NCBI GenBank assembly: GCA_038496445.1 | Contig: JALMLS010000411.1 | Location: 1-64,000, forward strand | DNA from: Trichosphaerium sp. ATCC 40318 | Taxonomy: Eukaryota > Protista > Tubulinea | DNA length: 64,000 nt | Reading direction: 5' to 3' | Shown: one piece after another, positions 5,129-58,200 of the stretch | Position numbering within the stretch: position 1 is the stretch's first letter | Layout: each line of letters begins with the position of its first letter | The notes under the pieces: model-generated | What the model was told of the DNA's origin: nothing | Database searches by the model: none | The model's input: only the letters and a program-made list of their open reading frames with translations | Translations under genes and position numbers: made by a program

Positions 5129-6160
<1,032 letters not shown>

Positions 6161-6618
6161 GCTTGTTAAACGGATTGCTACAATGATTGTGCGCGACTGT
6201 CAACAAAAATGTGCATCCAAAACCACAAACGCCAAGAATTATGCGTATCTCGTGATGTGTAATGCGTTGAACATAGAATAATATCACCCTGTATTTTAAC
6301 GTTTCAAGGGATGTCTAGCATCGGGATTGACGTAAAAGGTTAAAAACCATGAAAGAACGCTCCCTTTCGCTTGTACATTCGCAGTTGTGAATGTGGGAGT
6401 GAGTTATCGATCTTTTCTAGAGCGTTATTTAAATTTTTTTTATCCGTAGTGTACTCCGAAAGAATGATGTAATAGCAACACTAAGCTACCTTTTTGTTGT
6501 TGTATCCGAATAACATGATAACTGACACAGGTGTCTTTTTTTTCACCTTTTTCGAAAAAATCGACCAAAAAATTTTCGTGACGGTTCAAAAGCACGTGAT
6601 AAACTTGTCAAGGCAACG

Positions 6619-9218
6619 ATGGATTTCCTTGCCGAGGTCATTTCAAATACCACAGTAGAAGGGGAGAGCAGTTGCTCCCTTGTAAGTACCATCTAAAAGC
6701 AAGGGTAGTTAGTCACTTTTGTTGAGGAAGGAGATTGGTTGCCATGTTCGAACAACATAATAGCCAACATCTTCTTGATGATATTCTACGGTTATATTTT
6801 GGGGTTTGTACGTCACGTTTTGTTTTTTATGCTTAACACATTCTTACGACTTCAAAAGGGCTCGAAACTTATCGCTGATGGTAGTGAATTGCTATTGGAC
6901 GTATGTTGCAGCTTATCATTTTGACAAACACTAACATTTATAGATATTAAACCCTGGTACGGTATGGGTACGCGTACATTAATTGACGCCAGTACAGGTC
7001 TTATTGGTGGATTCGTGATACCATTTTTGGGTGAGCTAGATGTGCTACTACTTTCTCGCTCTAAATTTTCGTAGGTGCAATGCCAGACGCTATCATTGTC
7101 ATTGTCAGTGGTCTTGGCGCAGCTCATCGTGTCGAGGAAGAAGTAAAAGGTTCGCAAGCATTCACTATCGGCATAACCGCCGAAATGTATTCAACAGTGC
7201 TTTCGTTGTAATTCTTCTCCAAGTGGGCGTCGGCACCTTAGCTGGTAGCACAATCATGCTTCTTACAATAGCCTGGGGAGGTATGTGCTTATTACACAAC
7301 ACAAAACTGACCTGGTCACAAAAGGGAGTGTGTTAATAGGACGATGTGACATAAAGGATGGCGAAGGTATTCTATTTTTTTAATGCAATGAAGGACAAGT
7401 GTTAACCCCCATGTACAGCTGTCGATAAGACCAGAACAAGCAAGTGGTGTACGTGCACTTAATTTGGTATGAATATTGACGTGGAGTTCGTAGCGTTATT
7501 GTCAACAGGCGTTTCTTGTGAGCCTGACATGAAAATACAATCTCGAATCATGCTTGGGACATCTTTGACTTACCTCATTATTCAAGTACGCAGCCACCAC
7601 CTAAATGTCAATATTAATATGTCTCTAGGCAATCGCTTGGGTCTTTACCGACAAATCCCGTAGGATCCAGATAGACCAGCAAGAAGAGTTCGCTTTGGTA
7701 CCCTTTGAACAACCTTGTAAAATGAATCATTTTTAACTTGTAGCGTTTAGGCTGGGTTCATAGTAGCTACCATCCTATTCATTGCCTACAGTATGTTCAT
7801 GGTCCTCAACACAGAACAACAAGAACGTGAGATAGAAAAAGCCCAACAAGTTTTGCTCCACAAGAACGTATGTCGAAATTCAAACCCATGTAGCTTCATA
7901 AATTTGGTTGATCTCATTCACGTGGTAGATTGTAAAAGTGCTTGAAGACGAGATTGAGAAAATTGAAGAAGAGTTCGATGCTAAAAATGAGTCAATGGTC
8001 AGTGGTATCAATTACCTTCACACCAGCGACGAGGAAGCTCAATCGCTAATTTCTGCGTTCCCTCAGCCTGGTGAAGCAAGTCCAAGTGGCATCGATATTG
8101 GGTAAGCCAACAAAACACCTTTAAATCCAAAAAATGATAGTGTTGTCAGTAATCCTATTTTTAAGGACCCTTATCCGAGACCAAAACAGAAAGAACTCAG
8201 GCAGAGATACTCACGTATCCAGTGTACGTCTCATCCACACGTCACGCGAATTTCACAACTTTCCTGCAGGCCGTGTCGAAAATGCGTCGTTTGGTAAAAC
8301 GTCTTGAAGAGAACGAAGAAAGCACCCCAGTAGAGGAAGAGGAAGAGGCTGAGGAAGAAGTTGTTCTAACCAAGCGAGAAATACTGATTCGCAGTCCACT
8401 CATGCTTCTAGGTATTTAAATGAATCGTGTCACCCTTTGCTAACTTTATCCAAGTTGCCACCGTCTTATTATCTGTCTTTGCAGATGGCATGGTACTCTT
8501 AGTTGTTGATTATCCCAGATGTATTCTTACTCTATATGTCTAGGTAAAAGCGATCAGCAACTTTGCAGACGGCGTTGGTATTGATGCTTTTTACATTTCT
8601 TTTGTGGTATGTCCCTCATTAAAACAGTTTGGAAGCGTCTCATTTTATGTGTAGGTCACGCCGTTTGCTTCAAATGCTAGTGAACTTATCGCCAGTTTAA
8701 TCTTTGCCGCTAAAATGAAGAAAAAGAATATGACTATCACGTGCGCACATACTTTACCATTCGTTAAATTAACGTTTCACGAATAGCTTTGGAGCTATTT
8801 ACGGTGCTGCAATTATGGTGAGTTAACTTCCATCAAAGTACCCTTCTTGACACTGTTTTTCTAGAACAACACGCTTGTACTTGGTATTTTCCTTGCATTG
8901 GTTTACTTTAGGTTCGCTGCGATGTTCACAGTCATTAAGAACTTTGAACTCATTTTCTTCATATTAGAAAGATTTTATGGACATTTTCAGCCGAAGTAAT
9001 TACTGTTATTACCATCACATTCATCGTTGGTCTATTGGGTAGTTTTATGACAACCTTCAGGCACGTGTCATGACATGTCAATTGCGATTTTGTTTTATCT
9101 GTTACAAGGGTGTTAACCACTTTCTTAAAGGGCTTACTGGTCACCAATTATACTTTCCCTGTTCCCTCTGTCAATTGCCTTGGTGGCGGTACTCAGAACA
9201 TACGTGGTTTCTACTTGA
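6619..9218 (+). CDS. Na+/Ca2+ exchanger-like protein (NCL/CaCA family)
   Basis: GSKLIADGSELLL, GLIGGFVIPFLGAMPDA, VGVGTLAGSTIMLLT, TPFASNASELIAS, YGAAIMNNTL motifs typical of plant NCL. Confidence 0.85.
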
Positions 9219-9322
9219 ACCAAATAAGTGTTGTGAGAACCACCTCAAATAATAAAACGAAGTTTACAAACAAAATGTGCTGTAACAACGACGTAATCCC
9301 AATAGAAATGTTTATTGGTGGT

Positions 9323-11367
9323 TCATATGGCATCAGGTCTACCAACTACCCTTAGCCTTGGTGCTGCAAAGTTGAGCTCTACATCAGAAAACAGCTTTTT
9401 GAATTGAGAGATCAGGAGTTCGCGGTTATCACCCTCCCTGTCTTCAATTCCTAGTTTCTTGAGATTTGGTAGGCGTCCTAGACGTATGATACTATCGTGC
9501 GACAGCTCGAGGCATGTCAGGTTGAGTACTTTAAGATTAGTCATTGTTGAAATCATTGATGAAAAATCGGTTGGATAGGATTTTCTGCTTTGTAATGATA
9601 ACTCAGTGAGCGATGTAACTTGCGTCAAATGAGAAATGTCTTCTACTGTGCAGTCCTCACTAAGTAAAAATGTTGGTTTTGAACACAACCAGCAAAGAGT
9701 TGTACGTACAGTGTGCAGAATGTGGTGAGCGACACGAGACGTGTGAGTCGAGGTAAACTCGGTAAAGCTGGCTTCAATGACATGCCATTTATCCCTATGA
9801 TTGGTAAGAAAGACGTACAGGTAAGGTATTTGCTGTAACTAGCACTAAAATACAACTAACCTAGTACTTCGAGATTGTACAGCCAAGACAGTTTCTCTAA
9901 ACCAAAATCTACATATGACATTCTCAAATTGCGCAAATTTGTTAACAAGCCCAATCCAGACGCTGTAATCTGTTTGTAGCCGCCACCAACTGCACTCAAC
10001 GCCAATGTATCCAATACTTGCAAATGTTGTAAATAGTCGAGTGATAAACAGTACAACGGATGATGGACATGCACGATTAGTTGCTACGTTCGTCAGTAAC
10101 ATGCAACGTTTTAGAGCAAAAACTGACCTGTATTCGACGTTCAGCGAAACTCTTTAACGAGGCTGCTGAAGTTATGACATATGTACTGTCCTCGTCATAC
10201 GCATGTTCAACTATGGCATCGTTAATAGATCAGGAGATTAAATGATTGCACATACATCGTGGGTACAGACAAAGCCTATTCAATCGCGGTAATCCACTAA
10301 GAAATCCTGTGTGCAAGTTCTGCGTGGTGCCTGTCGAGTCTTAAAGACGCTCACAGTTAGCCTCACGTCAAAACTTTACTGAAGCATTATACGTACTCCA
10401 AAAAAAGCAAAGAGATTCCAATGTAGTTAATCTAGAAAGAGTTCTAACACGATCAAGGCTGAACCAATTGTAAAACCCAAAAATCTTCAATTTAGGCAAT
10501 TGAAGAGCAGTAAAGTCTATCACATCAGACACACGTTGTTGGTGATTCTGACGCGCACTGTAATCAGTGATACGCAATTGAGTAAGATTAGACAAGGCGT
10601 TGATTGACTCAAAACAAGGAGACGAAGGCATGTAGCCCAACAACGCCACTTCTAGCTGAACCAGCTGTGTCAATTGAACTATTTCTTCTGGCCACAACTT
10701 CTTTAGGGATATCAATGATAGATCAAGCCCTATCACGTGACATAAGTGTCTATAGCACAGTATCTAAAAAACTAGGAAAATGTGTCAAATTATACCTCTG
10801 AGTTGAACCATGAGTGGTAAGCTAGGAAGCAGCATCTTGGCGATTGTGTACTCCAAGTCAATCAATGACGCTTTTTTCTTTGATTCCATGTTCATCACGC
10901 CAAAACTGTGCAAAAGGAGCCCATGAGTGCTGATCAGGTGGTTCGTTTTCTGAGTCAAATCACTGACTAAACAGGTGGCGTTGATGACGGTTTTTGATTT
11001 GATGTACTGGGTGCGTGTACGTACCTTCTTTATTACTTTCAAAATCCGTGAATGAGAACGTTACTTGTAGGTGACGCAGGTGCTTGAACCTGAAGTTGGG
11101 TATAACGGTTTTATGGTGTAATTTAATTTTTAAATGTGTAATGTTACTGTCAACTACATTTTGTATCGGTTTACTGATTGCAGAGTAAAATAGAGTTGCT
11201 GTGGACGTTATGTCGCTTAGATAATCGAACAATCGCCAAACCAACTCGTCTGGTAGCATAGAAAAGCAATTTTGATGCGTTATGGCTGTAATGGTAAGCA
11301 TTAACTACAAAAAAATGCTAGTACCTTTGGTACCATCACCAAGAGCGCGCTTATGCGTGCCAGACAT
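9323..11367 (-). CDS. F-box/leucine-rich repeat protein
   Basis: FSMLPDELVWRLFDYL F-box-like N-terminus, then many LxxLxxLxL repeats (LTQVTSLTELSL, LPNLKKLGI). Confidence 0.7.
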
Positions 11368-11612
11368 GATTGCGAGCGTTCGTAGATCAACTAAGGTGAC
11401 TTAAAAAAAAGCCAGTACAAGTCAACTCAGAGACATTTTAAATTCACTTGTACTACTATTTTGTGATGTTCAAAGGGTGTATCAGCCACAAGTTTATTTT
11501 ACAAAAAAATAGGACAATCAAAAAACAGTAGTATCACTGATGGCGTCTTGTCCAAGAGGATTGGTGGCTGATCCATGATTGGGCTTTTAAATGGTCTACG
11601 TTACCAAGATAT

Positions 11613-12576
11613 TTAGATGACTCCCCACTTCTTCTCAAAAGCAAAACAAATCTTGGAACATGCACAAGCAGCACTTAGAGGGTATTTCGAAAAGCATATT
11701 TTTGTGTCAATCCAATCAATGTTTATACTTCCTCTAGCGAACCCACCAACTACAAACACAATATCTCTATCCAAGGTCTGTACGTAATTATCTAGATCAA
11801 TTGGCTCCGAACGACAAGTCGTACCTTAGGGAGTAGCAGGGTAAGTCCTTGAACTTTAAACAAAATAGAAGGTGGAAGTAAACAAAAAAAAAGTGACATA
11901 CCAATCTTTAGGGCGTTGATGCTGAAGTACTGTGTCACTGGATTTTTAATACATCTGAACAACATTTGAGGTCCAGATCCCGGCTTACCATCCGTGCGTT
12001 GTGCTTTGATTTTGAGCTCGTGTAGTAGTTGAACTGTATAAATGAGTAACAGAAATATAATTAACCAAACTTACCCATCAAGCCTGCAAATCTAGGAAAA
12101 GTACGTGGTATGCGCGTCTCAGGGTGGATTGTGATGAGCACGTTTTTACGAGTATGAATATACACTGTCAAGTGACCAGCCTTATTCAATGGGGAGTCCA
12201 TCAATGCGAGGAGACACTGTAGGAACGCATTTGTTAAGTTTCAAGCAGAATAAAATGTGGAATTTGAAGTTCCTACCTGGTGAACTACATCAGGCCTTGC
12301 CTCGTTGACGTCTCTGTCAAAACGCTTCATTACCTATTTGTTCATTAATTTTCTCGTTAAAATAGAGAAAATGAGAAAAACAAGCAAATTGTAGCCTACA
12401 ACGCGTTTAGTACCTTCCTATGCGCAGCTGAATCGCAATTTAACAGCTCAAAACCAGCTTTTGTTTTAACAATCTCCAAACATGCTCCTTCCAGCACTAC
12501 GGTGAGTCTATTGCGTAAGACTGTGTTTGGAACGACTAACAAACGTACTGCCCCTTTTTCTTCTTGTCTTTTTCAT
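11613..12576 (-). CDS. EMG1: rRNA small-subunit methyltransferase NEP1/EMG1
   Basis: [64 protein letters not shown]. Confidence 0.95.
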
Positions 12577-36563: not shown

Positions 36564-37055
36564 GCGGTACTTACCACAGTATTCAAGACATTGGATATAC
36601 ATGACACTACAGCACAATAAACCAAAATTTTACCTTTGAAAAGCAATTGCTGTTGTTCTTTACTGTTTTCTAACTTAGCTAACACCACGAATCTCACTTA
36701 TTTGCACATATTTTGTTTTTGCTAATATGCTATGTGGGATTCTGTCACCTTCCTCGTGAGATAACGCCAGTGTCACTTTGAATTCTTTCTACGCCAAACT
36801 TCCAATAGAAGGCCTTTTGTAAGTTATAACATACATATCTAAGGTGTAATAAGGGGTTGTGTAGCTGGTGTAACCAGTAATAAATCAAGGGTCCAATCAA
36901 TAATGTAGAATGTTGTAAGTAAACAAAAGTTTTGTTTCATAATTTATTGTACACAGAGAAATGTGAGCGTAAGAAGTTACAATGCCTTTTCAATGGAAGA
37001 GTGTACTGGCATGCATTAAAAAGCAGCGCTATTGCAGGAATGGCAAAAAGATTAG

Positions 37056-37127
37056 CTCCCGATCGGGGAATCGAACCCCGAGCTCCCGGATGAGAACCGA
37101 AAATGTTAACCATTACACCAATCGGGA
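37056..37127 (-). tRNA. tRNA-Glu(CTC), copy 1
   Basis: Cloverleaf: TCCCGAT/ATCGGGA acceptor stem, loop TT-CTC-AT, GTTCGATTC T-arm, TTTTT terminator 7 nt downstream. Confidence 0.93.
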
Positions 37128-40986: not shown

Positions 40987-43082
40987 TTATTGTTTTGCTT
41001 CCTCTTCTTTGTCTTCTTTTTCGTCGACTTCCATTTTGTCTGCTTTAGGTTCTTCTGCAGGTTTTGAGGCAGGTTTCTACAAAAGTTATGTTAATTGAAA
41101 AAAAAATGAAAGTAAAAGTAAAACAGAGTCCATGTGAAGTAATACGTACCTCTTTCTTCTCCATCTCGCCTAGGCGTGTGAACAAGTTGGCGAATGTCTT
41201 CTTATCCTTTTTCTTCTGTTGATTGATTCTTTGTTGCAAGCGTTGTAAAGCACGTTTGACTTCCTTGTTATCAGGATCGAGTTTCAAAGCACTAATTGCA
41301 AAAAATTAATCACCAAAAAAACAATCAAAAAGATGATAAATGATTTGGACGTTACGTTTTGAGATCAGTTCTAGCATCATCCCATTTATCAACAGCAATG
41401 TATGTTTGACCTCTTCTGTATAGTGCCTTAATATTATTGGCATCTTGTTCTAATACCTAGCGACAGGGGTAAGAAACTGCAGTACAAACGGAGCAAAAAA
41501 AAAAAAAAAAAAAAAATGAAGCATAAAGTTCTTCGCACCTTCTTGCAATGCTCGAGGACCTTGGCGTGGTCTTTTTTACGCATGAATACGGCAGCCATAT
41601 TGTTGTTGCAAGGCACCTTAATCTTTTCTTTAGCCTCAGCCTTTTCTTCATCCTTCAAATCATTGTCGTATTGAAAGAACTTTACGGCAACTTCGTATTT
41701 CTTCAAGGCACGATCGAATTTTTTCTGTTTGAATAATTCATTACCTTGCAGACGACGTTTCATAGCAGCTTCCATTTTATCAGAAAATTCTTTCATCTCC
41801 CAAGCTTCTTTCTCCTAAAACAAAAAAAAAATCAGAAAACAGCTAACATCAAAGAGGGAAGGGCGTTAAAACACAATTTGTTGGTGCCCAAATAAAAGTT
41901 GCACGTGACATGCATAACCAAGATTTTTAAGTGAAAAAAAAAAGTATTGGCAACACGTGAAATCATCAAGTAGTTGGGTAGTGGTACATACACGTGTGAA
42001 CTCTACGAGTTCGATAGTGTAAACAAGTGTTGCATTTGCAGGAATACCAAGTGCTTCTTCGCCAGCCTCGCCATAAGCATAGCTTGGTTGAATAGTGAGA
42101 ATTGCTTTTTCTCCTTGTTTCATGCTCTCCAAACCAACTTCAACACCACGGACTACTTGCTCTAAAAAAAACGAGTAAATAAATTAAATCAATCAAAAAA
42201 TTTCATGAGATGTATGTATTTCATTTTGTTTACCATCTCCAAGAATAACCTCAAAGTTTTCTCTCTCTTCGATTACTTTATCATTGCACTCGAGTTTAAG
42301 GTTTAGTTTACACTTGGTTTCGAATTTTGGTGTTTGATAGGCTTCCTTTGATCCCTCTACAAGTGTCTTCTTCATAACACCGCCATCCTAATGATAATAT
42401 AAGCAACGAGTAGCCAAGAATGTAAAATTGTTTTCAAAAAGAAAAAAAAACCATTTGAGTCGCGTTTGGGTTAGGTGGTAGGTAGGCTTGAGGAGGTGGG
42501 TTTGTTTGAAAGAAAATAAACATACATTTGACAAATCCCGTTCGTTGGAGAAAGAGACTAATTCTACTTCAAATACGAGTGTAGCGTTTTTAGGGATTTT
42601 AGGAGGGGATCCATTTTCGCCGTAAGCGTACTCAGGCGCCAAGGTGAATTTGGCGATTTCTCCCTTCTTCATGGTGGCTACACCTTGGTCCCAGCCCTTA
42701 ATGACGCGGCCTTGGCCGATTGGAAACTCAAAGAGTGTCCCTCTATCTCTTGAAGAGTCGAATTTGGTGCCATCGAGCAGGGTACCGACGTAGTGCACTG
42801 ATTGGTTGTAAGTAGGGCGTTGTTAGATATTTGTAGCCTATCAAAACAAAAACTTTGCAAGCAGCATTGTAGGCGTTTATAAAGTTCTTGGGCGGTACAA
42901 AATATGTAGTTATTGCGCGGAAACAGAAAAAAAAATGTACCTTTGACCTCTGAGCCGTTTATTGGCCTCTCGAAACCCTCTCCCTCCTTGATAATCTCTT
43001 TTAATATTCCTCCATCATTATTGATGTCCTCAGGACCTTTGGAGTCTCCTGCTTTTGCTAAGTTATCTTGGGTATCGGCCAT
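40987..43082 (-). CDS. FKBP-type PPIase with TPR domain (FKBP4/5/ROF-like Hsp90 co-chaperone)
   Basis: [19 protein letters not shown]...VIKGWD, second FKBP domain, TPR GNELFK...KALYRRG. Confidence 0.95.
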
Positions 43083-44488: not shown

Positions 44489-45055
44489 TTAGCGCACTCG
44501 TCCTTGTCTCTCAAGCTGTTGAAGGATGGATACGAGAAACTGTTCTATAGAGCAATTTTTGGGAGGTCCTGTTCTTTTTAAAGTGCTGTGAACTCTTCGA
44601 AAGTAAACGAAATATTCTGACGAGAAGTCCTTGTATTTTTTTCTCATTGCTACGTTCACGTGTCAAATACAATCAATCACGTGTATTTTATATAAACAAA
44701 ACAACTAACGTACCATCATACAATGCAGCAACAAATGAGGCATCTATAATACCAGTGTTAGAGGTTAAATTACAAAGGCAAGCGTACTCTCTTCAGTTGG
44801 AGGTAAAGTGGATTTCAATAGAAAAACAGCATAAAGATGCATCTGTTTTGTTGCCATTTTCCACCATCTCTTGCATGTTTTTCTCGCTCTTTTAAGGTCA
44901 TACATGATGAGGTATTTTAGAATCTCTGTAATAACGTCGTCTGGGAGAACAGGTAACGGTTTTGTCAAATCGATAAGTTCGCAACTTTTAGTCAGATCAA
45001 CATAACCTATCTTAGACGGTTTACATTCTATAATTTCGGCGTCTACATCTATCAT
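44489..45055 (-). CDS. Small F-box protein with N-terminal SIM-like motifs
   Basis: YVDLT and LIDLT precede LPDDVITEILKYL...RKTCKRWWKM. Confidence 0.7.
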
Positions 45056-45192: not shown

Positions 45193-47127
45193 ATGGCTGT
45201 AAAAGTAATGCCTCAGGAGCAGCGAAAGGTTCGGTATGTCACACCGGGCACGTTGTGGTACAAAGATGGCGTACGTTTGTTCTTCAACGCGTTTTTAAAT
45301 TTATTAACCGCTAGGCGTCAAGTACCTACGTCACGAGTTCTACAACGTAAAAGATTGGACAATGTAGCAAAGAAGGCTAAAATAAAGGATCTAGGTAAAA
45401 CATTGTTTAAAAACAGCATTAATAGCGAATAGACGGGTGGTACAGTAACGGTGCCAAACTTCTGAAACATGCGGAACCTCAATTAATGTAAAACGCCTCA
45501 AACCTATCAGAATCCTAACGTACGTTTAGGAAACTCTATGGTGGTGATGCTTATCTTTGCTTTTCTTCACTTTATCCAGCACATGGCTGGCTGTCATGGA
45601 AATTTTAGTACAAAAACAAAATGCTTTTTTGGAAAGTTTTTTAACATCTTGGCAGTACCATGCCTCCACATTACTGGCATAATAAACAGAACCAACGTGT
45701 ACATATGGACCAAATTAGTGAGATTTTGGGTGTCAAGCATTTAGATGATTGGTATGGCGTTAAGAGCCAGGATATCATTGAAAACGCCGCTGCGTTATTT
45801 GGGCACGTGCCAAATAGAAAAATTTTCTGGTGTTTACTTTTTTTTCAACAGGTACTTTGGCAACTCTCTTTCCGCCTGCCTTTCCTCGGTGTACCCTCAA
45901 TACCACTGGGACCCAACGAAGTTCAAGTAGGCATTTCTTTTGGAAGAACAAGGAGTGATTGATGTTGCACTTAGGCATACACCAAACAAGTACTGGGACG
46001 ATGTTGACAATCAAAGGAAACATCTTGATGCCATTGGAAAAAAGTTGAACCTGAAGCTTATGGATGATTGGCACACAGTGCTAGTCTCTAGTGTACTTGA
46101 TAATGGTGGCACACAAATATTGTATGTCATACTTGGAGTTACTATCCATGACCTTGATTAAGGCGACGATACAATAACGTGATGGAACAATGTCTGAGGG
46201 AGCTGTATCCGGATGTTACTTGGAAAAAGTGGAAGTTCTCAATCTATGTTCAAAAAAAGTGGACTGAAGTAAGTAAGAGAAAGTATCTCTGGCAAAAGCC
46301 ATATTGGATGCAAGAAAAGAACCAGAAAGCATTCTTGATGAAACTACAAAGGAATTTAAATATAACAACGCCGGAAATGTGGTAAGCTCTAACTATCGTT
46401 TTTCTCAAAATTATTTCAAGGTTTCTTGTCTTAAAGTCCTTTAGGTACAGAGTCTCATTCGATGACCTCAAATATAGTGGTGGATCAGGTATACGTAAAT
46501 ATTGGCCAAGGGCATTACTATCTCTAAGACCAGAATTTCCTTGGCAGTGGCGAGCGTTCAGTCACTTAAACAAACAAGCTAAACAAAGGTAATAGATCAT
46601 AACATTTTAGAATTTATTTGTTAATGCAACCTCTTTAGAGCTCTCATTGTAGTCCTTTGTGACATTTTTCCAAACATGGATATCATTGAAGAATTTGCAG
46701 TGGAGATGACTGACAGCATCTCCCCTTATATCACAGTGGATGCGTATATCCCATCGCTTGATCTTGCGTTTGAATACCAAGGTACATAGACGATTCTTAG
46801 GACTTTTATAACATGTACACAGGAGAGCAACACTACACTGACGTTCTTCCATGGCATTCTTCAGGGATGCAAATTTCTAGAGACAACGTCAAAGCTGAAA
46901 AGTGCAGAAGCGCTGGTAAGTAGAAATATTTTTCCGTACTTTTATTTCAAGAGTTTAATTAAGTGTTTTACTCTTTAGGTATTTCTCTCATTCCGATACC
47001 GTTTTGGTGGAAAGGAGACCACGAATCCGTAGTAGCAACCATTCTATATTATAGACCTACCATTGGCTTGATGCCAACACATGCACAACCTCTTCTTCAA
47101 AGTATAGCTAATGAAATGGGCAAGTAA
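45193..47127 (+). CDS. Tandem ~70-aa helical-repeat protein with a C-terminal PD-(D/E)XK (Vsr/DUF559/RAP-like) nuclease domain
   Basis: Four repeats P..YW....NQR...D.I...L.....DDWY.V....GG..L..Y......L...YP...W..WKF, then VDAYIPSLDLAFEYQGEQHY...RDNVKAEKCRSAGISLIPIPFWW; start uncertain (45193 or 45236). Confidence 0.8.
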
Positions 47128-47158: not shown

Positions 47159-47546
47159 GGGCATCTCATGAAACCAAATCAAGTATCTGTTGTTGTACAG
47201 TAAAGACAAGGTAGATACAGATACAGAATGAAGTAAGCTAGCAACGCTGGCGGACTGACATGGCACGTTTTGCATGGTTAAGTAAGCATTCCCGATTGGT
47301 GTAATGGTTAACATTTTCGGTTCTCATCCGGGAGCTCGGGGTTCGATTCCCCGATCGGGAGCTAATCTTTTTGCCATTCCTGCAATTACACTGCTTTTTA
47401 TTACTTGCCATTGACGCGATACATGAGCTGCGATTGTGTTTAAATTGGATACAACGACAAAGCAGAAAATATTTATTTTCGTTGTACTACATTTATTACA
47501 ACATGTGGTACTTGCAACATATCAATAAACCTTTTCAGGTTAAACC
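47159..47546 (+). repeat. ~390-bp direct repeat, copy A, containing tRNA-Glu
   Basis: Near-identical to 52241-52632 from gggcatct to caggttaaacc. Confidence 0.95.
47290..47361 (+). tRNA. tRNA-Glu(CTC), copy 2
   Basis: Identical 72-nt cloverleaf to copy 1. Confidence 0.93.
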
Positions 47547-52240: not shown

Positions 52241-52632
52241 GGGCATCTAATGAAACCAAATCAAGTATCTGTTGTTGTACAGTAAAGACAAGGTAGATAC
52301 AGATACAGAATGAAGTAAGCTAGCAACGCTGGCGGACTGAGATGGCACGTTTTTCATGGTTAAGTAAGCATTCCCGATTGGTGTAATGGTTAACATTTTC
52401 GGTTCTCATCCGGGAGCTCGGGGTTCGATTCCCCGATCGGGAGCTAATCTTTTTGCCATTCCTGCAATTACACTGCTTTTTATTACTTGCCATTGACACA
52501 ATACATGAGCCACGATTGTGTTTAAATTGGATACAACGACAATGCAGGAAATAAATATTTATTTTCGTTATACTACAGTTATTACAACATGTGGTACTTG
52601 CAACATATCAATAAACCTTTTCAGGTTAAACC
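52241..52632 (+). repeat. ~390-bp direct repeat, copy B, containing tRNA-Glu
   Basis: Near-identical to 47159-47546. Confidence 0.95.
52372..52443 (+). tRNA. tRNA-Glu(CTC), copy 3
   Basis: Identical 72-nt cloverleaf to copies 1 and 2. Confidence 0.93.
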
Positions 52633-55289: not shown

Positions 55290-58200
55290 ATGGCAGCCAC
55301 CGAAGAGAACCAACGCGAGGCAGGTGATAAGTTTTACGCCACCCCGGAAGAAGACGTCGATAGTGTCATTGACGGCGACGAAAGGGAGGAACTTAATAGA
55401 TATAAAGAATACAACAAGCAAGTAGCCAACTTGGAGGCATTGGCAACAGGAAAATGTAAATTTCTAAAGCAATACTTGACCAATGGCCCATGGTATACTA
55501 ACACGCCTGAACTTTCAATAAAAAAGGGTTTGGAGCCATTAAGTAAAGAAGCGATACAAGCAAAACGTAAAGAGGCAAGGATTGCATCAAGAAAACTTAC
55601 AGAGCAATTTGAAGGTACATACACATACAAAAGCCAAATTACTGTTGATTTCCCAATTTTTATATTTTTTTGTTTTATTTCCTACAACGTATACTTTACG
55701 CGTATGAGAATACAGTACAATAGTTTTAAATCTACAAAAAATATTCCGAAAAAAAAAACTAACCGAAAAAAATCTGTTTATTGACAAAATATGTTCATAG
55801 CTCGTTTCAGTCAAAACAAGGCGGAAAAATGGATGCGTGATATGATAAAGATGGGTACATTCGGAAATAGAATGAGCGTTTCAGCGCTCTTGGTGCTTGG
55901 TGCACCACTTTTCAGATTAAAGGTAAGCACGTGATTCAATTCAGTCGAAAACTATTTCTACTCAAGAGTCTTTTTTTTTTTTTTTTTTTTTTGGAAAGCA
56001 TGAAGCTCACTTAGAATTAGAGGTTGGATAAGATTGAACAATTTTGTAAAAAGAAGAGAAGGGAGACTGTCCAAGCAACAAAAGTATTAAAAGATTTGTT
56101 CATGCAATTGCTACCTAAGAGCAGAAAATTAACGTGCGTGTTCACTTGTTTTTTTTTTTGAAATATTATTTTCTTCTTCGGTGTACTGTTCCTTTTCTGA
56201 TGGGTATAGGTGGTTTCAAAAACAACCTTTGGAGCAACCAGATGTTGGTGTATCCCATCTTATATATTGGCAGTTTGAGCATGAATTGAAAGAGCGTTAT
56301 GAAAAGTTTATTAGATACTTACGTGTACGTTGATTACAAAAAAAAAAAGTAAAAAATTTGAGACAGCGCAGAATCGAACTGCGATCCCAGCACTGGAAAT
56401 GCCGCATGCTAACCTTTACACCACTATCCCTTCTATACATAAGTGCATAATATTGCAGTTGACGCCGCTCGCCTGAAGCGCAAATGCAGCACGTATGGAA
56501 GGAAGCGATGTGGGTTTTTTGACAACTTTTTTTTTTTCCTTATGGTCGTTGTAACTTTGTGAAAAGGGTCGGGCTTTCGATGAGATGATGGATTTTCGTA
56601 TTTCTACATTATCTGTAGTCTATCAATTACTTTCAAACAGACAAGAACAAGAGATGCAACTCTTAGGCATTCTTGTTACAAAACTGGTACGAAATACGTT
56701 TTTAGGTCTTCGTGACGGTTACCTTCCTTTCTTCATTTCTTTTGCCAGAGGCACTCATTGTATATTTAGTCTGACGGAAACAAATCTGTCAGTAGTATAT
56801 CAGATAAACTATTAACTCGGTTACTAACAAAACACACAAACATGAAATTGAGCGTGATAAAGGTACGTAAATTACCACTAAGCACCTTTGCTTGGTTTCT
56901 ACCTTAACCTTATTTGTAACGCTATATCTCAGGCAATTGCAAGTCATTTGGCAAGTCTCACAAAGACAGCGCAACCACTACAAAGGTAAGATAACCGTAC
57001 TACAACTAGGACTACTCGAGAAATTGTTGAATTCTGTCCTCTAAAAAAACGATGATATTCACTTTATTTGACTAACTTACCATGTAGATACTACGCATTA
57101 ACTTTCTTAAATAATGTCATACTTGCGAGTGGTGAAGTTGATGTAGCTAGAACACTTATTGAAGTCTACCTAAAAACATTTAATGACATGCAAACCATCT
57201 ACAAAGGAAAAGCTGAAAAGAAAATGTTGGACCCAATCATTACTGGAATTAAAAGAGCTGAACCATATGCCAGGCTAACAGAAGCGTAAGATCAATAATT
57301 TTTAATGTATCCCTTCTAACCATACGCTTAGTGGTAAATACGATGATTATATCAGTGTTTTGTTCAGACTTGCTCATTCTGTTGATCTAAGACATGGTAT
57401 TATGGTTCTTCATGTTCTATACGATGTTGCCATTAAAGATAGCGTAAGTTTTTTTTCTTTATAAAGAAGCCAAGGTGTTGAGCTAACATTTATTCAAAAA
57501 ATAGAGCATCAAAGGACGCTACTTTTCTGCTTTGTATTCAAGAATGTTATCTCCTGAAGTGTGGACAAATGATAACTTATCAACATACTTGAATGTTATG
57601 TACAAGGTATAACACAAAACCTTTTTTTTTTGGATCATGTGATTCGTCAACTTATTTTTTTGGTAGTCGCTTAAACACGATACCTCACTTATTCGTGTTG
57701 TGGCTTGCATGAGAAGATTGTTACAGACTTGTTACTACCAAAAGCCTAATACTCTGTTGGCCGTATTACTTTTGATATCCAAGGTATTGTGTTGAAACCC
57801 TTCTAAACAAAAAAAAATTGCGCATTTTGGCTGACTTGTTCTGTGTTAGTTGCTTAAGCAAAGGCGTGATTTGAAGGATTACTTAATCAGACACAACGTA
57901 TTTTTTACAGCACGCTTCACAAAACCAAGACAAAACTTGGTCGGTGATGATAAGAAGGAGGAAGAAGAAAAAGAAGCTCCTTCAAAGAACGAACAAGAGG
58001 AAGAACAAGAAATGGACTCTGATATCGAAGTATGCTCTATACCTATACGTTTAGTATCTCAAACTATGAATTAGGAAGGTTCAATGTCAAGTGATGACGA
58101 AGACGACGATAGGCAAGATAACAAGCGCAAACGAGAAGGTACACCTCAGGATGTGCGTAAGGCGTGCTAATCGTGAGATTTGTAGAGCGACCTAGAGTTG

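Follow-up and report, generated by a model that had tools for sequence, protein, structure and literature searches.

A tandem helical-repeat protein with a Vsr-class nuclease domain in Trichosphaerium that probably finds and cuts specific nucleic acids

In plants, algae, animals and apicomplexans, the expression of organellar genes is run by proteins that pair helical repeats with small nucleases, and TALE and PPR repeats have been made into programmable tools. The closest described systems to the gene considered here are the organellar RAP proteins—FASTK and FASTKD1–5, Chlamydomonas OPR-RAP proteins such as Raa3, the apicomplexan HPR/RAP proteins and Arabidopsis RAP—which have a targeting-like N-terminus, helical repeats and a Vsr-like PD-(D/E)XK domain. 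The same layout is encoded at positions 45193..47127 (+) of a 64,000-nucleotide stretch of Trichosphaerium sp. ATCC 40318 (contig JALMLS010000411.1), which as a whole is referred to below as the window. The gene was modelled with 11 exons from its splice sites, its translation and an end-to-end alignment with homologues, and its 480-residue product is probably an enzyme that locates and cleaves particular DNA or RNA targets, most likely in mitochondria. As a design, the succession of targeting sequence, helical repeats and Vsr-class nuclease is already known; the repeat is undescribed and the nuclease domain lies outside the curated RAP model. The family to which the protein belongs differs from RAP proteins in having a repeat of about 72 residues and five helices, rather than a 34–38-residue hairpin or FAST_1/FAST_2, in its invariant catalytic-type residues, and in the DNA ligase carried by some members; it is also found in lineages that are reported to lack RAP (PMC8190603). 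A known design occurs here with a repeat that has no solved counterpart or clear Pfam family and with fully conserved active-site-type residues, and the family bears both on the identity of the nucleases by which amoebae process or maintain their mitochondrial nucleic acids and on whether a new modular recognition code exists.

The nuclease part also has relatives among the Vsr, DUF559, DUF2726 and EDxHD (I-Bth0305I) endonucleases, with which it shares the core fold, the motif Asp ... Glu-x-x-Gly-x-x-His ... Asp-x-x-Lys and, for DUF2726, weak but recurrent Pfam matches. Vsr-type enzymes are small bacterial or phage proteins, or are combined with zinc-finger or NUMOD modules, whereas in the present family the nuclease is paired with a long repeat array. 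Glu-x is followed by Gln, Asn or His in this family and by Asp in Vsr/DUF559-type enzymes, and the window gene, unlike theirs, is eukaryotic, nuclear and intron-containing. Moreover, the window gene is not embedded in an intron, an intein or a mobile element, as would be expected of an EDxHD or Vsr-like homing endonuclease, but is free-standing, with an F-box-like gene on one side and a tRNA gene on the other. Fusions of TALE, PPR or PUF arrays to nucleases are alike in concept only, as tandem modules of variable repeat number joined to a nuclease; they have no relation to the family in sequence or fold, and its unit is twice as long and has no defined specificity positions that we could find.

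Splice sites in the gene were set by the GT..AG consensus, the reading frame and homology. Joining the exons gives a 1,443-nt open reading frame (ORF) of 480 codons without an internal stop, and residues 51–472 of its translation align with single-ORF homologues at about 30% identity, with E values down to 4e-73 (BLASTP). The multiple alignment with these homologues crosses all ten exon junctions with only two length differences: repeat 2 is 4 residues shorter at intron 4, and the exon 7 linker between repeats 3 and 4 is 15 residues longer. Since homologues encoded by a single ORF match the model from one end to the other (E 1e-73), both the repeats and the nuclease are parts of one polypeptide. 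An earlier note on this DNA had proposed such a fusion, and the peptides that it quoted were all found where it had placed them. About 60 single-ORF homologues carry both parts, so the question of one gene or two is answered by homology, not by RNA, and we reject the reading as two separate genes.

The C-terminal domain, of the Vsr/DUF559/DUF2726/RAP class of PD-(D/E)XK folds, occupies residues 352–470 (46584..47094, on the plus strand, as are all features of this gene) and spans introns 8, 9 and 10; it was delimited by a family hidden Markov model (HMM) and the fold of a homologue. The HMM, built from 41 other proteins, matches residues 334–460 with 127.7 bits (E 1.5e-41) and runs ungapped across the three exon junctions. 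In the alignment of 41 nuclease domains (A2; about 35% identity), eight columns are invariant (Q19, D56, P60, E67, G70, H73, D93 and K96) and seven are nearly so (W5, A65, Y68, Y74, P111, W113 and W114). The window protein keeps all 15, in the segments KQRAL, VDAYIP, FEYQGEQHY, SRDNVK and IPFWW. VDAYIP (residues 386–391; 46736..46753) holds the invariant Asp of the 'PD' type and the invariant Pro (columns D56 and P60); FEYQGEQHY (residues 397–405; 46769..46836), which is split by intron 9, holds the invariant Glu, Gly and His (E67, G70 and H73); SRDNVK (residues 419–424; 46876..46893), in the following helix, holds the invariant Asp and Lys (D93 and K96); and IPFWW (residues 438–442; 46996..47010) supplies the Pro-x-Trp-Trp that follows the last core strand and is nearly invariant (P111, W113 and W114). 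In the numbering of the window protein, six of the invariant residues are D387, E398, G401, H404, D421 and K424. The catalytic-type residues, which had been described as apparently intact, are thus present at every family-invariant position.

To place the fold, we used an AlphaFold2 model of a homologue (P0160:63-499; 61-row alignment), which has a predicted local distance difference test (pLDDT) score of 91.4 and a predicted template-modelling (pTM) score of 0.72, and compared residues 307–437 with solved structures by VIA-align. As had been predicted, the C-terminal domain of this homologue folds as a PD-(D/E)XK nuclease of the Vsr/DUF559/RAP class. The highest Z scores were those of two Toxoplasma gondii mitoribosomal proteins (11.0 and 10.6), followed by the I-Bth0305I catalytic domain (9.8), the DUF559-like structure 3hrl (9.3), a Tetrahymena mitoribosomal protein (9.1), the FASTKD4 RAP module (8.9) and Vsr (8.9 and 8.7); the remaining PD-(D/E)XK enzymes scored below the Vsr-class matches. 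The core common to Vsr, I-Bth0305I and 3hrl gives Z 8.7–9.8 over 92–125 residues, with a Foldseek probability of 1.00. Because the invariant residues are kept and the homologue fold matches I-Bth0305I, 3hrl and Vsr, the nuclease is likely to be active.

Structure alone cannot part the RAP (RNA) branch from the Vsr/DUF559 (DNA) branch. A substantial possibility, although not the one that we favour, is an organellar RNA-binding or RNA-processing factor like FASTK, OPR-RAP and HPR-RAP proteins, in which the repeats would read a mitochondrial transcript and the RAP-like domain would cleave or hold it. FASTKD5 is reported to cleave pre-mRNAs (PMC12242768). The T. gondii mitoribosomal proteins are the top solved matches in Foldseek also (E 3e-4), RAP proteins are the best whole-length structural matches (nuclease part, Z 8.9–11.0), the best reviewed matches over the whole length being Arabidopsis chloroplast RAP and FASTKD1–4, and one relative carries the automatic UniProt name 'RAP domain-containing protein', which we treat as a lead only. 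Presequence-like N-termini and a multi-paralogue family with 2–25 repeats per protein, as in the PPR and OPR families, would suit such a factor, and the family could be the missing counterpart of RAP in Amoebozoa and Excavata, where a survey found RAP undetectable (PMC8190603). However, the Z scores of the DNA nucleases are nearly as high, the relatives are annotated as uncharacterised or as DUF559 or DUF4046, and a cluster in the ESM Atlas is largely giant-virus in content. As a set, the catalytic-type residues are invariant in the family but only about 50% conserved across RAP domains (PMC8190603).

Sequence profiles place the domain nearer to the DNA branch. The Pfam RAP model (PF08373) matches 1 of the 41 family nuclease domains, at E 0.034, and none of the exon pieces from the window. 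By contrast, DUF2726 matches 17 of the 41 below threshold, and one protein passes it (P0038; 29.6 versus 24.7 bits); the window protein was scanned for DUF2726 exon by exon only, without a match. P0038, a Cavostelium transcript and the sole scanned member above the DUF2726 threshold, carries two tandem nuclease domains (343–487 and 554–696).

In three homologues, the nuclease is followed by an ATP-dependent DNA ligase of the Lig E type: P0094 (655–964), P0088 (495–758) and the Cavostelium isoform P0152 (700–1082). Two of the three score 35.5 and 38.7 bits with Pfam PF01068 (threshold 26.2), and among solved structures the ligase regions pick out minimal bacterial (Lig E-type) DNA ligases, with E values of 6e-25 and 4e-24. 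No RNA ligase appeared in the lists of solved structures matched by these regions; the recurrent fusion partner is a DNA ligase, which speaks against the RNA factor. Motif I of the ligase is intact in two of these proteins and degenerate in the third. The ligase-fused homologues stand in two separate places of the nuclease tree, in which many forks are poorly supported, so the link to ligase is not a single accident. A search with the ligase region for more fused members found only unrelated architectures. The fusion suggests a cut-and-seal activity on DNA, and to our knowledge ligase fusions among repeat-nuclease proteins have no described parallel.

Taken together, we tentatively favour, as close to an even call, a modular mitochondrial endonuclease whose substrate is more probably DNA than RNA. 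The four strongly basic five-helix repeats of about 70 residues would bind an extended stretch of nucleic acid, and the array would position the C-terminal, metal-dependent Vsr-class nuclease, with a putative active site of Asp387, Glu398, His404, Asp421 and Lys424, for nicking or cutting next to that stretch. The protein is probably directed to the mitochondrion by its basic, acid-poor N-terminus, a location that we infer because presequence-like N-termini are shared by the window protein and several of its homologues. There, it might nick or cleave mitochondrial DNA for repair, recombination or replication. DNA is favoured because ligase fusions occur in two parts of the tree, because the nearest Pfam family is DUF2726 and not RAP, because the viral structural relatives are mostly annotated as homing, restriction or DUF559-type endonucleases, because AlphaFold DB proteins annotated only as DUF559 align over most of the model, and because the catalytic-type residues are invariant, unlike those of RAP domains and of the inactive FASTKD4. 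The earlier note had suggested mitochondrial RNA processing, which stands as one of two live options; DNA is at least as strongly indicated by the ligase fusions and the nearest sequence relatives.

Several points weigh against this reading. The characterised eukaryotic proteins that join helical repeats to a Vsr-like C-terminus (the FASTK family, OPR-RAP and HPR-RAP) all act on organellar RNA (PMC9181182, PMC12242768), and the best solved and reviewed matches to the whole architecture of the modelled protein are organellar RAP RNA proteins. The window protein has no ligase domain, and ligase occurs in only 3 of about 75 nuclease-bearing representatives, including the one with the degenerate motif I. 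The gene model is based on consensus, frame and homology; structures were predicted for homologues that share about 30% identity with the window protein, rather than for that protein itself; and for the modelled single repeat no structural match reaches significance (best Z 4.0), so its fold does not identify a binding partner.

The viral and phage relatives raise a further, improbable explanation, namely that the protein is a selfish or conflict-related DNA nuclease of phage or giant-virus homing-endonuclease-like ancestry, expanded in amoebae, with a mobile-element or defence role. The EDxHD homing endonuclease I-Bth0305I is the closest free-standing enzyme fold, many phage and giant-virus homing, restriction and DUF559-type endonucleases match structurally, and one AlphaFold DB entry, which from its accession series we take to be of viral-metagenome origin, aligned over nearly the full length (E 4e-18). 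However, this is a nuclear gene with ten spliceosomal introns at periodic repeat positions, it has ordinary host-type flanking genes with no terminal repeats noticed around it, a viral contig scan with P0033 gave no match, and the presequence-like N-termini suit a host organellar role. An NCBIfam scan of family members returned nothing meaningful, and PADLOC returned nothing of note, bar a weak match of one member's nuclease part to mREase_II (a methyl-directed restriction enzyme). The defence role that had been raised for the gene thus finds no evidence in PADLOC or in its ordinary host-gene neighbours.

It is less probable still that the protein is a non-catalytic scaffold, with the repeats engaged in protein–protein or ribosome-assembly contacts and the nuclease-like domain serving only as a binding module. 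There are precedents, in that the Vsr-like pocket of FASTKD4 is reported to be inactive (PMC11879112) and RAP proteins form part of the structure of apicomplexan mitoribosomes (PMC11652630, PMC11742926). In the present domain, however, the set of Asp, Glu, His, Asp and Lys does not vary over 41 sequences at about 35% identity, as one would expect if selection were acting on an active site, and the ligase fusions imply strand breaks.

The N-terminal 45 residues (45193..45327) were recognised as presequence-like by composition. They contain 8 Lys and Arg against 2 Asp and Glu, with an isoelectric point (pI) of 11, which bears out the basic, acid-poor character previously ascribed to them. Several homologues, two ligase-fused ones included, also have presequence-like N-termini, which in several are of the classic Arg/Ser-rich, acid-free kind.

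The four Trp-rich repeats that follow, of 63–73 residues each, were delimited with a repeat HMM of 73 positions, iterated over 996 repeat instances in 178 proteins, almost all of them other than the window protein. Repeat 1 (residues 49–111; 45337..45605; E 5e-15) lacks about the first 9 positions of the unit and spans introns 1 and 2, repeat 2 (residues 114–182; 45660..45924; E 8e-25) spans intron 4, and repeat 3 (residues 185–257; 45979..46238; E 1e-27) spans intron 6. Repeat 4 (residues 279–343; 46302..46559; E 2e-15), which spans intron 7, is of a degenerate nuclease-proximal type that is conserved by position across homologues. When the spliced protein was compared with the window by tblastn, its repeats cross-matched one another's exons with E values of 2e-10 and 1e-8; the repeats are more than a chance resemblance. 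The consensus reads P-x-x-Y-W ... N-Q-R-x-F ... L ... W-Y-x-V ... G-G-x-x-L-L-x-x-Y ... S-L ... L ... Y-P ... W ... K-F, with near-invariant Trp at positions 6, 31 and 68 and Pro at 64.

A model of a single repeat (68-row alignment; pLDDT 88.1) has five helices. Foldseek returned nothing under E 5.8 for it in the PDB, and VIA-align, which is independent of Foldseek, gave a best Z of 4.0 against 48,161 chains, too weak for a fold name; the top weak matches were TetR-type helix-turn-helix, Slx4 CCD, RAD51 N-terminal and SAM domains. PDB sequence profiles gave no real match for the repeat or the nuclease domain, no Pfam repeat family was matched in the proteins scanned, and Pfam found no match in nine exon translations of the window protein. 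Membership of the PPR, OPR, TALE and mTERF families was rejected, since no matches were found and the unit is different (73 positions, five helices); the earlier note was right to set the repeat apart from them. The only recurring link is to DUF4046 (PF13255), and it is remote. AlphaFold models of DUF4046 match the repeat region in Foldseek (E 1.9e-7 over 314 residues), a template-modelling score of 0.64 was obtained in the ESM Atlas, precomputed PF13255 matches exist on P0159, P0173 and P0094, and a protein-atlas search with exon 7 returned only unnamed amoebozoan clusters and DUF4046 leads. However, only 2 of 61 members match PF13255 at E<0.1, identity is 13–19%, and DUF4046 is itself uncharacterised, being named in Bacillota clusters.

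The repeat region has a net charge of +19 (47 Lys and Arg versus 28 Asp and Glu; pI 9.6), whereas the nuclease domain is acidic (pI 5.2), and on account of this strongly basic character the repeats could bind nucleic acid. Among 13 close homologues, conservation of the repeats follows their place in the array, and the last two before the nuclease have signatures of their own. In the same proteins, positions 33–42, 45–46 and 49–53, among others, vary within and between proteins. This variability, which is spread across helix 3 and the next loop in no clear two-residue pattern, fits a diversifying binding surface; the repeat code that had been postulated is not demonstrated by it, as no defined specificity positions were found. 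It would be bold, and in our view doubtful, to propose that the family is a nuclease system of natural origin that reads sequence module by module through a new recognition repeat, with repeat-to-target rules that could be decoded and re-programmed like those of TALE and PPR proteins, and that its ligase-fused members recognise, cut and re-join organellar DNA as single-chain enzymes.

A search profile made from the intron-free first halves of repeats (A1) was run against 1.84 billion cluster representatives. At E<=1e-3 it matched 970 proteins, of which 217 reached E<=1e-10, and a single protein had as many as 17 matched stretches; the 970 are clusters at 50% identity, and no functional name was found among them. 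A family that is both expanded and uncharacterised, as had been envisaged, is thus what the search returned. The C-terminus of the model recurs as a C-terminal domain in about 60 of the best 150 A1 matches (local phmmer). Named sources are Cavostelium apophysatum and Nematostelium gracile (Amoebozoa), Heterolobosea sp. BB2 and an MMETSP transcript from a marine protist, the last being the nearest relative of the window protein in the nuclease tree (Shimodaira–Hasegawa-like approximate likelihood ratio test, 97). The other members come from metagenomes or unannotated assemblies, in which the adjoining gene calls look eukaryotic. One intronless member of 2,124 residues, with 17 profile matches, lies at 6001–12375 of a 1.37-Mb metagenome-assembled eukaryotic contig (L001), between kinase and TIM-like genes. 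The AlphaFold DB matches are annotated solely as uncharacterised, DUF559 or DUF4046, and some consist of repeats only, others of repeats with a DUF559-type nuclease; going by their accessions, they presumably include dictyostelid, planctomycete, Bacillota and giant-virus-metagenome entries. We found no paper that describes the family, none on DUF4046 and none linking a RAP-like family to Amoebozoa; DUF2726 appears in surveys only.

Exons 1–6 of the gene lie at 45193-45394, 45433-45487, 45530-45607, 45656-45793, 45852-45926 and 45975-46121, and exons 7–11 at 46163-46381, 46445-46588, 46639-46781, 46823-46915 and 46979-47127. Introns 1–10, all of which are GT..AG, measure 38, 42, 48, 58, 48, 41, 63, 50, 41 and 63 nt. 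The sequence of the exon 7 linker contains a possible eleventh, in-frame intron of 30 nt (GTAAGT..AAAAG; 46269..46298), shorter than every one of the ten accepted introns, the removal of which would shorten that linker by 10 residues. Of introns 1–8 (45394-46589), seven are in phase 2. In repeats 1–3, the introns fall in this phase at two recurring points, after the closing K-F and mid-repeat, so that half a repeat corresponds to about one exon. This recurrence at two repeat positions indicates that the array grew by duplication of exon pairs.

A stop codon lies in frame just 5′ of the ATG at 45193, and an F-box-like ORF and a tRNA-Glu gene bound the gene on its two sides; the gene is therefore complete within its limits. 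The F-box-like ORF (LPDDVITEILKYL motif; 44765-45055 (-)) is divergent and ends 137 nt upstream of the ATG, which leaves a very short intergenic promoter region. Comparison of the spliced protein with the window by tblastn found no second copy of the family there. Further upstream, exon-sized ORFs at 41434-43082 (-) encode a segment like an FKBP-type prolyl isomerase and then a TPR-like segment, and would form an immunophilin-type gene. Downstream, the tRNA-Glu gene (47290-47362 (+)) starts 163 nt past the stop codon of the repeat-nuclease gene. It is one of four scattered tRNA genes in the window, three for tRNA-Glu(CTC) and one for tRNA-Gly(TCC), the others lying at 37055-37127 (-), 52372-52444 (+) and 56359-56430 (-).

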